The translations under genes were made by a program, and so were the position numbers. 64,000 nucleotides of DNA from the NCBI GenBank assembly GCA_965240325.2, contig OZ251222.1:372001-436000 (forward strand). Direction: 5' to 3'. This DNA comes from Rebecca billardiae RCC1528. Its lineage: Eukaryota; Protista; Haptophyta. This document shows positions 55,744 through 63,406 of the stretch, piece by piece (position 1 is the stretch's first letter; every line of letters begins with the position of its first letter). The notes beneath the pieces were generated by a model. It saw nothing but the letters and a program-made list of their open reading frames with translations. It was not told the origin of the DNA and searched no databases.

Positions 55744-55745
<2 letters not shown>

Positions 55746-57069
55746 CCCTTGGCGACGTCGCGATGGTGCCCGCCGACGCGGCCCCCGCCCCGCTCGCTGG
55801 CCCCGGGTGCGAAGCACACGGGGCTGGTGGGGCGGGGGCCGCATGCCTGTGGTGCTCCCCCATGCTTATCTTCGGCAATCTCCTGCGCGCTCGTAGGCCT
55901 CGCGGCACTCCTGCTTGGCTGCAACATGACTACGACTAGTTCTACGACCTCTACGACCACTTCTTCCTCCCTTCGTGCGCACGCGCTGGCCCTCGCAGGG
56001 CCAGTCGGACGCGGCGTGGGTGGCGGCACGAGCGCGGCCAGCGCGCTCGGCCTGCCTGCCTGCGAGCCTCCATGGATGCGTGCGCGTGGGGCCGGGTTCT
56101 GCCACCGTTCATTGCCAACAGCAACTGGGCACGGACCTGCGACGAGGCATGCCGCCTTTCCCCACGCGCCCTTCAGGTTGTCCCGGCTCAGCCGGTCGCT
56201 TCGGCGGCCGATGGGCCCTCGGCCGGCTCGATCCCCCTTCCCGGGGACTCGGTGGGGCACCGCCAGGAGTGTCTCGCGGCGGGCGGGCCGAGCGCGCGGG
56301 TCGCCAGCTGACCCCGCGACGTTCGATTCGACTGCTCTGCGCTGGCACGTGCACGCGGAGATCAACCACACGCAGCGGGTCCGGGATAGGCACTGGCACC
56401 CTCTTTCTCCAGCCGGCCGCCGGCTGCATCGCCTCGGGGGGCGATGCAGCAGGTGGACGCCGCTGCACCCATCTGGCCCTTGGCGCCGGCCTCCACCGTG
56501 CCCCTCGCTCCACCCTAGGTGGGGCAGGGGGTGCGGGGTGTGACGAGCCCAGGGGCCAGGTTCCCCAGCATCAAGCACTGCATCTGCAGCAGCCCGCCGG
56601 CGGGCCGGGCTGCGACATCGACTACCACCTCACATCTGCTTCATCGCCCAGAGCGCGCTAGGCGGCGCGCTCACTCTCCAAGCCCCTCTTCTGCAGCTGC
56701 GCGCCGCTTGGCCGGCGCGCGGCGACGCGCACTACGACCTCATCCTCATCCAGGCGCCCACGCGGGCGCACGGGGGCGACAGCCGCGGCTGCCGCTTGCC
56801 GGGGCTGCTCGCCGCTAGGTCGGCGGGCGGCGACATCGACTACGACCTCACCCTCATCCAAGTGCTCCGGAAGGCGCTCGGCCGCGGCGGCATCTGCCGT
56901 CGCCGCCGTGTGCCCCAGGCCGAGGCGGTGCTCCATCCCGGCCCCGCTCCCGTAGGGGGGCAGGGCTGCGGGTGGCGCACTGTCTGACCTGGTCGGAAGG
57001 CGCGGACGCATTCTATGTGTCCGTTGCACTCTTGAGCCTGACGCTTGTCCGATGCTGCCACGTCGTTAA
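55744..57069 (+). mobile_element. Putative non-autonomous retroelement (~1.3 kb) with a CRE-like 3' tail, between TA tracts
   Basis: Ends ctgacgcttgtccgatgctgccacgtcgttaa, versus ctgacgcctgcccgttgcataccacgtcgttaa in the CRE-like element; a second truncated copy follows; 5' boundary uncertain. Confidence 0.65.
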
Positions 57070-57075
57070 ATATAT

Positions 57076-59135
<2,060 letters not shown>

Positions 59136-59154
59136 ATATATATATATATATATA

Positions 59155-59268
59155 TTAACGACGTGGTATGTATCATATATATATTTTAACGACGTGGTAT
59201 GTATCATATATATATATATGTGTGTATCCATACCACGTCGTTAATATATATATTAACGACGTGGTATG
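59155..59268. repeat. Four 16-nt copies of the retroelement tail (CATACCACGTCGTTAA) in TA repeats, both orientations
   Basis: 59155-59170 (-), 59186-59201 (-), 59229-59244 (+), 59253-59268 (-). Confidence 0.92.
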
Positions 59269-59492
59269 GATGATACACACATATATATATATATACTGCT
59301 ACCGATTTTACCGCTCCAAACAGGAGGTAAACTTGAACTTCCACTCAGATAAATTAACACACCACGCCCAAGAGCTGAGTGAATCAGAGCGATCACAAAG
59401 TCTACATTATTGCACCCGCCACGGTACAATAGATATCGTGCGCCCCCCGCCCGCGCTCCCCCCGCAGTTCTTCAGGCGGCGCCTTCATCACG

Positions 59493-61955
59493 ATGCTCGT
59501 TGGCGAGGCGGACGAGGCTCAGGCTGGATGGCTGACGGTTCGCGATCACCTCGACGCGGCGCGCCGCTCTGCGAGGAAGCGCCGCCTTCTTCTCACCGGG
59601 CCGCCACTCGTGCTTGGCCTCACTTTGGTCGTAGTCGGCATTCTTCTCCTGTGGGCCTCGTCACAGGCCGTCGCGAGCGCAGGATGGGTTGCGGGCACGT
59701 CGATGATTGCAGTCGGGGACCCGCTCGTGCTCTTAGGGCTGCTCCCTTCTGACAGCCGCGCCATCAAGTTCACCGGCATCGTCATCACCCTCGTCACTCT
59801 CGCGCTGGCGCTCTTTGCTTTGACCTTCACGCTTGGGTTCGTGGCCGAGGGATTCCGTGTGCCCGCCTGCAGCGTACTCGACGTGATCTACTCAGACTTT
59901 GCACAGTGGCAGGCGCTTGTAGTCGCATGGGGCCTCGCGGGCGCGTACAGCGCGCACGGCGTTGTGCAGGCGATCCGAGGCCGTCTCTGGCCGAGCGCGC
60001 TGATGCTCCGCCTCCACCACACGCTAGCCTTCGGTTACCTCGCCTTCGGGCTCGTGCTCGTGGCGGGAACCGTGCAAGTCGGCATACGCTCGCCGCCGGT
60101 GTTCCGCACGACGCATTTCGTCGGAAACGTGGTCATGTGCGTGCTTGTCAGCACGATCGGCGCGCTCGAGCTCACGAACGACGTGCGCGCACGCATCCAC
60201 GGCTGGCTGGCCGCGCGCGGCGAGCTGATGTCATCTGCGGTGGGCATCGCAGCCATTCTGCACAGCTCAAGTCTCGACGAGGTGCTGCGGAGCGCGGCGT
60301 CGCGCATGCGCGGCGTACGCGTGGAGAAGCTCACGACGTCCGAAGTCTTCATCTCCACGGATGACCATGCGCGGTACGCACTCACGACGCCCGCGCGCTT
60401 CGCCGAGGTCGACGCGTTCATCTCGCACTCGCACCACGACGACCCTCACACCAGGTGGGCGGCGCTGCAGGCGTGGCGGCATCACTTTGTGCGCACCGTC
60501 GGCCGCGAGCCGACGGTCTGGCTCGACACGTGCTGTATCGGCGTGGCGGACGCGGGGACAGACGTGGGCAATCTGCCCTGCTACATCGCCGGTTGCAACG
60601 AGTTTGTCATCCTCGCAGGCCCATCATTTGCCGGACGGCTGTAGACGACGGTCGAGGTCTTCTGCCGCGCGCGCATGGGCGCGGCCGCGGACACGATCAC
60701 GCTTTACGAGCTTCCCGGTTACAACTCCGAGGCGACGGTCGCGGCGTACGACGTGCGTGAGTGTGCCTGCTCGCGCCACGAGGACTACTTCCGCCTGCTC
60801 GCATGCATCGAGTCTGCGAGCGACGGAGGCCTGGACGCATTCAACGTGGAGATGCGCACGCTGCTCGCCAGCGTGCCCAAGCGCCAGGTGCCGCCGCTCA
60901 CTGAGGCCGAGCTCGAGGTCCTCGCACGGCCGCCCGACATTGAAGCCCCGTCGCGTGGGCCGCACCGTACCATAGGGCTCGTGAGCGGCGGCGACTGGTC
61001 TCTCGGGGCGCGGGCGGGCCCGACGCTCAACCGGCCGGGCCAAGCTGATCCTGCCCCTGCCTCGCCAACGGCAGTGGCCCCTGCCTCGCCAACGGCAGTG
61101 ACGGTGCCGCCCGTCGACGAGCACGCGCGTGAGGTCGGCCCTCGGGCCACCAGTACCACGCCCGATCAGACGGGCACCGAGGAAGCCTCCATGCTGCCGC
61201 TGCACACGCGGATCAGTGGCTTGCTGCTCCACGGCCTGCTCCGTGCGACACGGCGCGTGCCACAGCAGACGCCACAGCGGACGCGGGCGAGCACGGTCGA
61301 GCCCGGCCCGATCAGCCTGGCTCGTGCCCGGCCGCACTCGAGGGGCTTTGCGCGTGCGGTGATCGCCTTTGGAGTGGTGTATCTTGTGGTGATCGTGAGC
61401 GTGATTGCATGGGCGGCTGCTCCCGGCGAGGCCGACTGCCGCGCATGCGAGCGGCTGTTGAAGGAGCAGCTGCCGGCCGGCGGCGTTCCCGCCGGCGAGT
61501 GGTTTGCCCCCGCCTTCGCCAATGCCTCGTCTGAGTACCTCTTCTCGGGGCTGGGCAGCTCGCCGCGCCAAGGCCTCAGCTCGTGGGGCGGCGCGCTCGC
61601 AGCGTGCCGGGCCGATGGCGGCGCCCTCGTCGCCATCGGCAGCGGCGCCGAGGATCGCTTCACGTACTGCATGCAGCGCAACGCGGCGATGGGCACGTGG
61701 ATTGGCTACTCGCAGCGCGCTGGTGGGGCCTGGGCGTGGGCGGGCGGCGCGCCGGTCGGTGGCGGTGGCGGAGGATGGACGGAGTATCGCAATTGGGCGA
61801 AGGGCGAGCCTGTGGCGGACGGCGCCTGTGCATTTACCGGTGGGAGGATCGGGCATGGCTGGTCGGCTGTGGCTTGCAACGCGCCTCAGTCGACGTCCAC
61901 AACGTTGCATGCCTACATTTGCGAGCGTGCTGCCCGTGGCGGTCGCGGACACTGA
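59493..61955 (+). pseudogene. Multi-TM + TIR-like + TM + C-type lectin receptor-like gene with one in-frame TAG (60642-60644)
   Basis: TIR-like: DAFISHS..WLDTCCI..LPCYIAGC..ILAGP..RL*TTVE. C-type lectin: W..A..AC...GG.LV.I..WIG..W.W..YRNWAKGEP..C..W..C..YICE. Both ORFs are in the same frame. Confidence 0.8.
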
Positions 61956-62565: not shown

Positions 62566-62945
62566 TCAGCTGTTCCGAGGACCGAGGAAGCTGTCCAGGT
62601 GCAGCAGGCACTGCTCGTACAAGATGACGAGCCACGCGCACGAGTCTGCCAAGAAGGCGCGCACGGCGTCGGCTGGCGTGGCACTGGCAACTTTGCGGGC
62701 CACAAGCACGCGCTGACCGGGCACCCAGCGGCACAGCTCGTGGGACCACTTGGCCAGCACGGCTGCCGGTACGATGATTAGCACGCGCTCATGTGGCCGC
62801 TCGGCCAAAACGATCGCCTTCGCGCTCTTCCCGAAGCCCATTTCGTCGGCCAGCACCTGGCCGTCGTACTTGTCCAGGCGCTCTAGCACCATGCGCGCGC
62901 CTTCCCGCTGCTCGGGGCTGAGCTGGAGGCCCTCGACCCCATGCC
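62566..62945 (-). pseudogene. SNF2-family helicase N-terminal fragment
   Basis: L.PEQREG..VLADEMGFGKS (motif I) and LIIVPAAVLAKW..EL.RW (motif Ia); stops before any DExH. Confidence 0.7.
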
Positions 62946-63406
62946 CGAGCTCATCGTCTGCTGCGCGCGCTTGACAGGAGGGCAGCGTGCGCGTAAACAA
63001 AGCGAAGCAGGCAAAGGACGGGGTTGAATGGATACCAACCACCCACACGTGAGCGCGCGAGCGTCATCCACGACGCCTCTCCGCACCACGGCGGCAACGC
63101 ACACGCGCAGCACTGGAAGAAGCCGAGCACGATTCGAACTAGTGTCAGAAGATGCAGGAGCCGTCAGACGCGCGCGCCCGAGCGTGTCTCCCCCGGCGAC
63201 GCCATCGATCTGCCGGCTCACTTGCCTCGACGTGGCCACGCGCGCCGTACACGCCGCCGCCAGCTCGCGCCCGAGCGCGCTGCGCGGCACGCTCTCGACG
63301 GCCACGACCGCCGGCCGGGCCAGTGCAAACTGCAAGTGCCAGTAACACGCGCGATACCGTGATGGCGGAGGCACGCCGAGCCCAACGGCCCAAGACTGGC
63401 TGAGAG

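Follow-up and report, generated by a model that had tools for sequence, protein, structure and literature searches.

Does a gene of the haptophyte Rebecca billardiae RCC1528 encode a membrane receptor whose TIR-like domain is cut in two by a stop codon, and is that stop real? The question is raised by positions 59493-61955 on the forward strand of a 64,000-nucleotide stretch of contig OZ251222.1 (positions 372,001 to 436,000; the whole stretch is called the window here). A preliminary description of this locus proposed about six membrane helices, an intracellular TIR-like domain, a further helix and an extracellular C-type lectin domain, interrupted by a TAG in place of a conserved tryptophan codon. 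It also suggested that the receptor recognizes glycans, and it treated the architecture as unfamiliar. Our analysis gave no support for glycan recognition and showed that the architecture is not unique, whereas the domain order, the predicted topology, the TIR-type fold and the change at the tryptophan codon held up. We read the locus as a recently disabled one-exon gene that belongs to a large family of protists, chiefly haptophytes (probability about 0.75), and we judge it about as probable that the TAG is real, either fixed or allelic. The host alga has very GC-rich DNA; among named organisms, it is closest to Diacronema lutheri and Pavlovales sp. CCMP2436.

The interrupted gene and its intact paralogs

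Translation of the locus gave a single reading frame with one internal stop (GRL-TAG-TTVEVF) at 60642-60644, which agrees with the two joined open reading frames (ORFs) first described. The gene consists of 383 codons, the TAG and 436 codons, is terminated by a TGA and runs through 820 codons without a second stop or a frameshift. The stop stands in the context CGG CTG TAG ACG ACG GTC GAG, with an A as the following base. Both halves still look like coding sequence, because the GC content of third codon positions is 0.81 in each piece versus 0.45 to 0.60 in the flanks. The TIR-like motifs quoted in the preliminary description (FISHSHHDD, VWLDTCCI and NLPCYIAGCNEF) were all found in the translation.

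We searched the organism's own genome (72 Mb, 41 contigs) in six frames, using the 114 residues preceding the stop as the query. Four close paralogs are intact: L002 (contig 30), L003 and L005 (contig 14, on opposite strands and a few kilobases apart; G000 C14:197477-205483) and L004 (contig 23). Each is one unbroken, single-exon ORF of 799 to 865 codons, with the same order of parts as the window gene and a Lectin_C match at its C terminus. Identity to the window gene is 72 to 74% in DNA and 54 to 57% in protein. The upstream ORF of the window is colinear with all four paralogs, and an overlay of an intact paralog on the locus flagged "1 TAG." The assembly contains neither a second copy that is nearly identical to the locus nor an alternative haplotype of it. 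TAG is an ordinary stop in this genome, as L003 terminates with it.

At the column of the window TAG, all four intact paralogs carry TGG. The encoded tryptophan (W147) is invariant across our 86-sequence alignment (A3), and so is the glutamate four residues on (E151). The motif around them had been proposed to read R-L-W-C..E in proteins of this kind. This is indeed its usual form in the 82 aligned sequences outside the close paralogs, where R, W and E are present in 100%, C in 98% and L in 93%. The claimed change of TGG to TAG at a conserved tryptophan is thereby upheld. The gene thus shows the sequence pattern of a pseudogene or null allele, in which an early stop falls on a conserved residue while the rest remains colinear with intact relatives. 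The absence of any intact homolog with both the TIR-like and the lectin domain had been named as grounds for doubting the description; such homologs were found, namely, L002 to L005 and several metagenome proteins.

The C-terminal halves of L003 and L005 are closer to each other (nonsynonymous divergence [dN], 0.156; synonymous divergence [dS], 0.25) than are their N-terminal halves (dN, 0.30; dS, 0.41), which suggests gene conversion or a mosaic history. An exact 34-nucleotide stretch (60670-60703) is common to the window gene, L003 and L005.

Table 1. Features of the interrupted gene, in window positions
Feature	Position	Strand	Basis or remark
Upstream ORF, 383 codons	59493..60641	+	N-terminal cytoplasmic tail (predicted), six membrane helices and positions 1 to 146 of the TIR/HET-like domain
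Six-helix membrane bundle, residues 39-227 (predicted)	59607..60173	+	Hydropathy and paralog model
TIR/HET-like domain, 221 positions, interrupted by the stop at position 147	60204..60866	+	Maps 1:1 onto the L003 domain model
In-frame TAG replacing the invariant Trp of R-L-W-x-x-x-E	60642..60644	+	Paralog alignment
Downstream ORF piece, same frame	60645-61952	+	
GAG, invariant Glu, 3' of the stop	60654..60656	+	Putative position of the TIR catalytic Glu by motif register and model range
First ATG after the stop, opening a 426-codon downstream ORF	60675..60677	+	Aligns inside the domain; no gene start
Low-complexity Pro/Ala/Arg-rich linker, variable between paralogs	60867..61355	+	Gappy alignment; paralog-model pLDDT below 50
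Seventh membrane helix, residues 622-640 (predicted)	61356..61412	+	Kyte-Doolittle value of 2.71; helix in paralog model
C-type lectin-like domain, predicted extracellular	61437..61952	+	Pfam Lectin_C at 61581-61886
TGA, natural gene end	61953..61955	+	

Domain folds, topology and the wider family

The middle domain was modeled on intact L003, whose domain is equal in length to that of the window gene and 67 to 72% identical to it. AlphaFold2, run on the 86-sequence alignment, gave a mean predicted local distance difference test (pLDDT) score of 94 and a predicted template modeling score of 0.90. With this model, the top 50 Foldseek matches in the PDB were all TIR domains (probability up to 0.99), including those of RUN1, RPP1, SNC1, TLR10, SARM1 and bacterial proteins. 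VIA-align likewise listed only TIR domains, with a Z score of 8.5 and a root mean square deviation of 3.0 to 3.5 Å over 108 to 127 residues to RPP1 and SARM1. The TIR-fold core covers approximately positions 65 to 221 of the domain model, and the residues invariant in the alignment are D70, F72, F95, P103, W106, D108, C111, P125, G139, R145, W147 and E151. We assign the TIR fold because every top row was a TIR domain and the conserved motifs fall into register, so that the TIR-like domain first described stands as a fold, of the flavodoxin-like alpha/beta type with parallel strands known from solved TIR domains.

As for the register, the family profile (...L-V-V-L-x-G-x-x-Y-L-x-R-L-W-C...) aligned, although with a nonsignificant E value, to strand C and helix C of the TIR domain of SIGIRR, and the W-C-x-x-E spacing agrees with the TIR alpha-C motif in that alignment. 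SARM1 residues 561 to 676 aligned to model positions 68 to 221, which places E151 near E642 of SARM1. In the window gene, the codon for the glutamate at this putative alpha-C position stands 3' of the stop. The UniRef label of one Diacronema member is "TIR domain-containing protein." The family motifs F-x-S-H-S-W, W-x-D-K-x-C-I-D-Q and R-L-W-C-x-x-E appear to resemble the three blocks of the HET domain. Pfam HET matched 55 of the 86 members (best E value, 0.0011) and TIR_2 matched 40 (best E value, 1.2e-6), all of them weakly. A passage of PMC10890737 that cites PMC4986451 describes HET as a remote homolog of TIR. We place the middle domain in the TIR/HET fold superfamily, outside every curated Pfam family.

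Several results weigh against this assignment and its functional reading. The best Foldseek E value was only 8.5e-3, and a VIA-align Z score of 8.5 barely exceeds the tool's stated background of 7 to 8. All of the HET and TIR_2 matches within the family were under the Pfam gathering scores; in this test, P0098 reached 18.5 bits versus a cutoff of 28. In the pieces of the window gene, Pfam TIR, TIR_2 and HET gave no match at E values up to 1 to 10, and the same was true of the four close paralogs. The window subfamily also departs from near-invariant residues of the family (W77 is replaced by H, the D-Q of C-I-D-Q is lost, and C148 is replaced by T, A or Q). Lacking these residues, even its intact copies may differ in predicted activity. 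A homodimer prediction with two copies of the L003 domain scored 0.00 and carries no weight either way.

The downstream piece ends in a true C-type lectin-like domain (PF00059), as first claimed. Pfam Lectin_C matched with 33.2 bits, above the gathering score of 22.6 (E value, 9.2e-8; profile positions 4 to 100 of 107), and the PDB sequence matches included FcRY (E value of 4e-22, summed over repeats), PLA2R and DC-SIGN (E value, 1.7e-8). The full paralog model matched the folds of CD23, langerin, LOX-1 and ASGR with a probability of 1.00. The core cysteines and the W-I-G motif are kept in the window copy. We placed the EPN and WND sites by means of the PDB sequence alignments and the known C-type lectin domain consensus. 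They read EPV (within GEPV) and WSA (within GWSA) in the window copy and EPV or EPA and WSA or WST in the paralogs. Because the EPN and WND ligands are replaced, classical calcium-dependent sugar binding is unsupported. The proposed glycan recognition was therefore not borne out: the calcium and sugar ligands EPN (or QPD) and WND are absent from the window copy and from all four paralogs. Possible ligands are proteins, lipids, minerals or nonclassical glycans.

Within residues 39 to 227, hydropathy analysis gave five segments with Kyte-Doolittle values of at least 1.5 and a weaker sixth (residues 143 to 161; 1.22). The six segments coincide with six long helices of the intact-paralog model (pLDDT of 85 to 97). 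The full-length model of L005 (mean pLDDT of 76) has the order of six long helices, TIR domain, disordered linker, long seventh helix and C-type lectin fold. In this model, pLDDT mostly exceeds 85 to 90 in the TIR domain and the helical bundle, drops to less than 50 in the linker and amounts to about 70 to 89 in the lectin domain. Near the membrane, there are 18 lysines and arginines on the side of the N terminus and the TIR domain versus about 5 on the opposite side. This positive-inside count predicts that the TIR domain is inside and the lectin domain outside, and hydropathy, model and residue count together support the topology originally suggested, with about six helices and one more downstream. 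The six-helix module had no family match in Pfam, NCBIfam or ESM Atlas features, and its structure matches were weak rows to G-protein-coupled receptors only.

The family to which the gene belongs is large. The six-frame search returned at least 133 genome matches to the 114-residue domain query. A profile built from six genomic domains found 3840 proteins at E values of ≤1e-3, and 853 at ≤1e-30, among 1.84 billion representative proteins; this exhaustive search was used in place of a full-length word-index search, which gave no match, and a region-restricted one, which gave 6 proteins. Most of the proteins found are 450 to 650 residues long, with the domain after about 200 to 300 residues, and such typical members consist of the membrane module and the domain without the lectin part. 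The members with a species name, annotated "hypothetical protein," are those of Diacronema lutheri and Pavlovales sp. CCMP2436.

The lectin-bearing form itself recurs. Lectin_C is also C-terminal in metagenome proteins P0003, P0004, P0010 and P0155, and the seventh helix plus lectin domain has at least 11 matches in the host genome. Five close ones are the window gene and L002 to L005. The other six are weaker, but all have a TIR-like match no more than about 3 kb away; the one on contig 11 is the L007 gene. ESM Atlas models of the same domain shape are mostly haptophyte, with Lectin_C, HNOB (heme NO-binding), MORN and DUF285 as partners, and TPR partners occur in oomycetes and ascomycetes. 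The domain is therefore a module coupled to many sensor-type domains, and its fusions to HNOB, MORN, DUF285 and TPR point to a modular sensor-effector system. With these genomic occurrences, the metagenome proteins, the ESM Atlas cluster and a fungal analogue (PMC10890737), the architecture is not unique. Our literature search found no published description of the complete layout of six helices, TIR/HET domain, helix and C-type lectin domain.

Some members depart from the usual form. One ENA metagenome protein of 1110 amino acids (P0001) has the unit of membrane module and TIR/HET domain twice in tandem in one polypeptide. Distant members L015 to L018 (G000 C30:669500-672500, C27:796500-799500, C38:690000-693000 and C3:4077000-4080000) have introns at conserved places. 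One intron directly follows the tryptophan codon of R-L-W and has a GTGAG donor, so that a six-frame reading gives RLWW and then a stop; a second follows F-V-S-H. Both are missing from the lectin-bearing subfamily of the window gene. A reading of "stops inside" as a 7% pseudogene rate was withdrawn after alignment of four of the five other flagged matches (L015 to L018): the TGA in L016 and L017 is the GTGAG intron donor after the tryptophan, and L015 and L018 break at the tryptophan or in intron-like gaps. L014 (G000 C7:3803500-3807000) has a TAG inside the C-terminal helices (F-N-A-stop-L-R), away from the tryptophan. Its domain is spread over two frames and has no F-x-S-H-S motif, so that either degradation or a large number of introns may explain L014.

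Origin of the stop codon and flanking sequence

We next considered how old the lesion could be. At columns fixed in the other four copies, the window gene differs at 10.5%, compared with 13.2% for intact L002 and 14.0% for intact L004. Pairwise dN/dS ratios are 0.47 to 0.56 in comparisons with the window copy versus 0.64 to 0.71 among the intact copies, with little difference between the two sides of the stop. Only 2.6% of the possible single-base changes in the window gene create a stop. As the 820 codons are free of further stops and of frameshifts, the gene can have diverged neutrally after its inactivation by less than about 0.05 substitutions per site if only stops are counted, and by less than about 0.012 if indels are assumed to occur at 1/10 of the substitution rate. 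The dS between the window gene and its nearest paralogs is about 0.66. Taken together, the divergence, the dN/dS ratios and the lack of a second lesion indicate that selection kept the gene over nearly its whole history and that the stop is either recent or not real.

Three possibilities weigh against reading the locus simply as a disabled copy: an error in the assembly, a heterozygous intact allele that may exist alongside the TAG allele, and a programmed rescue of the message. In case of a consensus error, the organism would have TGG at 60642-60644 and an intact, functional gene, as would suit a single lesion with constraint signatures whole on both sides. We consider such an error unlikely. 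A public Logan contig (run ERR14847148) agrees with the assembly at all 3327 bases from 60674 onward, which argues for good local consensus quality. Furthermore, so small a share of single-base changes gives a stop that an error-made one is expected in a 2.46-kb gene at only about 6e-4 to 6e-3, for per-base error rates of 1e-5 to 1e-4. The Logan contig starts 31 bases after the variable base, 3' of the stop. We rejected the interpretation of this start as a k=31 break at a single-nucleotide polymorphism, as the break is accounted for by the 34-base exact repeat that the window gene has in common with L003 and L005; because the repeat branches a k=31 graph exactly there, the start is uninformative on the stop. 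Public look-ups of the 383-amino-acid product and of a 75-amino-acid partial (60417-60641) gave no match and were also uninformative.

A programmed rescue would have UAG read as tryptophan, after adenosine-to-inosine (A-to-I) editing of UAG to UIG or by readthrough, and would yield the full-length receptor conditionally. Stop-loss A-to-I editing is known from sexual stages of some ascomycete fungi. The stop lies exactly at a tryptophan codon, TAG is on this account the sole stop that A-to-I editing turns into tryptophan, and the gene otherwise looks fully constrained. However, a recent mutation accounts for the same facts, we found no evidence for such editing in haptophytes, and the base after the stop makes it TAG-A, a nonleaky context. 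The other flagged stops in the family also fit otherwise (intron donors in L016 and L017 and, in L014, a TAG that is not at the tryptophan). Rescue therefore seems highly improbable. Hardly any weight falls on two separate genes, one for a protein of six helices that ends in a short cytoplasmic tail, the other for a single-pass lectin-like protein starting from the ATG at 60675. Both ORFs exist, and a public gene call on the Logan contig gives exactly the 426-amino-acid product, but the split would lie inside one compact domain with invariant residues on both sides, and no paralog is split at that point. The ATG aligns with an internal methionine of L003 to L005, and the downstream product would begin with half a TIR fold and have no signal sequence. 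Even taken together, RNA-level rescue and two genes have a very small chance of being correct. Splicing around the stop was rejected as well: 259 in-frame GT/GC...AG intervals span it, but invariant residues would be lost with the removal of any one of these, and the paralogs with which the gene is colinear have no introns. We thus favor a real TAG, which should be recent because the rest of the 2.46 kb is undamaged and constraint is normal on both sides.

About 200 to 370 bp upstream of the start codon, a nest of palindromes at 59124-59295 has the structure CCACGTCGTTAA-(TA)n-TTAACGACGTGG. The TTAACGACGTGG unit is present as three direct-repeat copies within a (TA)n/(TG)n microsatellite, and a perfect 23+23-nucleotide palindrome lies inside the nest at 59226-59271. 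The nest adjoins a retroelement-like stretch (55744-59135). On the other side of the gene, a minus-strand ORF at 62566-63048 has an SNF2-type helicase N-terminal motif, and Pfam SNF2-rel_dom is assigned to it in the public gene call from the Logan contig.

Proposed function and known systems

The ancestral chain would have run from a cytoplasmic N terminus through the six-helix bundle, a cytoplasmic TIR/HET domain, the disordered linker and the seventh helix to an extracellular C-type lectin-like domain. A G>A change would have converted the invariant tryptophan codon of R-L-W-x-x-x-E into TAG. As assembled, translation would end after 383 residues, past strand C of the TIR fold, and the product would be without the invariant glutamate, the last TIR strands and helices, the seventh helix and the lectin domain. 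In this form, the window copy cannot act as a full-length receptor. In intact members, the outside domain would bind a ligand, probably not via the classical calcium-sugar site, and binding may alter how the membrane helices pack or cluster. On the cytoplasmic side, the TIR/HET domains could then self-associate and either cleave NAD+ or act as a scaffold or signal for defense or cell death. We infer this sensor-effector function from the list of parts and the predicted topology.

A more specific reading, in which intact members are one-chain surface receptors of marine protists, with a TIR/HET enzyme that is switched on by a ligand of the outside lectin-fold domain and either consumes NAD+ or makes a nucleotide signal, and in which the window TAG is a segregating null allele, is tentative and rather doubtful. 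Segregating null alleles are seen in fast-turnover immune-receptor families. RNA editing of UAG to tryptophan would be a still rarer variant of this reading. We regard the family as new in the sense of a variant of known TIR/HET sensor-effector designs and the window locus as a recently disabled, or possibly miscalled, copy. TIR and HET domains drive both innate immunity and regulated cell death across animals, plants, fungi and bacteria; to our knowledge, little has been established about the means by which single-celled algae of the sea perceive viruses, grazers or mates. A family that couples the TIR/HET fold to varied sensor domains, numbers hundreds of copies per genome and has thousands of representatives in ocean data is a good candidate for an algal surface-sensing system. 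If its stop is real, the window locus shows gene loss within this family, and a natural null copy is a possible marker of turnover or strain polymorphism.

The predicted design resembles animal Toll-like and interleukin-1 (IL-1) receptors in that a single polypeptide links a recognition domain outside the cell, through a span of the membrane, to a TIR fold on the inside. The TIR domains of TLR10, TLR6, TLR15, IL-18R-beta and MyD88 were among the structural matches of the L003 domain model. In contrast, these receptors are type I single-pass proteins with an N-terminal leucine-rich repeat or immunoglobulin ectodomain, whereas the algal order is reversed and multihelix and the algal domain has no membership at the level of hidden Markov models. 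TIR domains of Toll-like receptors act as scaffolds. The NAD+-cleaving TIR domains (SARM1, RPP1/RUN1/RPS4, AbTir and SPARTA) gave the best structural matches, with Z scores of 7 to 8.5, and the algal family has an invariant tryptophan followed by an invariant glutamate at the W-C-x-x-E spacing. Identity to them is only 10 to 22%, however, and the algal domain adds N-terminal helices and a C-terminal helical extension. Animal type II C-type lectin-like receptors (DC-SIGN, CD23, LOX-1 and NK receptors) similarly have a helix followed by a C-terminal extracellular lectin-like domain. With neither EPN nor WND, the algal domain is like that of LOX-1 and the NK receptors and unlike that of DC-SIGN, and the algal protein differs from all of these in that it is predicted to signal via a TIR/HET domain of the same chain.

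Among haptophytes, Gephyrocapsa huxleyi was reported in 2025 to have TIR-domain genes that are expressed during virus infection and recovery; some of the proteins combine a part outside the cell with a TIR domain inside, in which the conserved glutamate is retained (PMC12489294). The same report describes no additional domains on the TIR genes and neither a lectin fusion nor a six-helix module (PMC12489294). The nearest described analogue is the fungal combination of HET and lectin-fold domains in the Podospora anserina het-B protein BH, which has an N-terminal HET domain and a C-terminal lectin-fold domain (PMC10890737). Both designs fuse a TIR-related HET-type cell-death domain to a C-terminal lectin-fold domain, and both belong to large, fast-evolving families. 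BH is fungal and without membrane helices, and its lectin fold is not of the C type, whereas the two domains of the algal protein are predicted to lie on opposite sides of the membrane.

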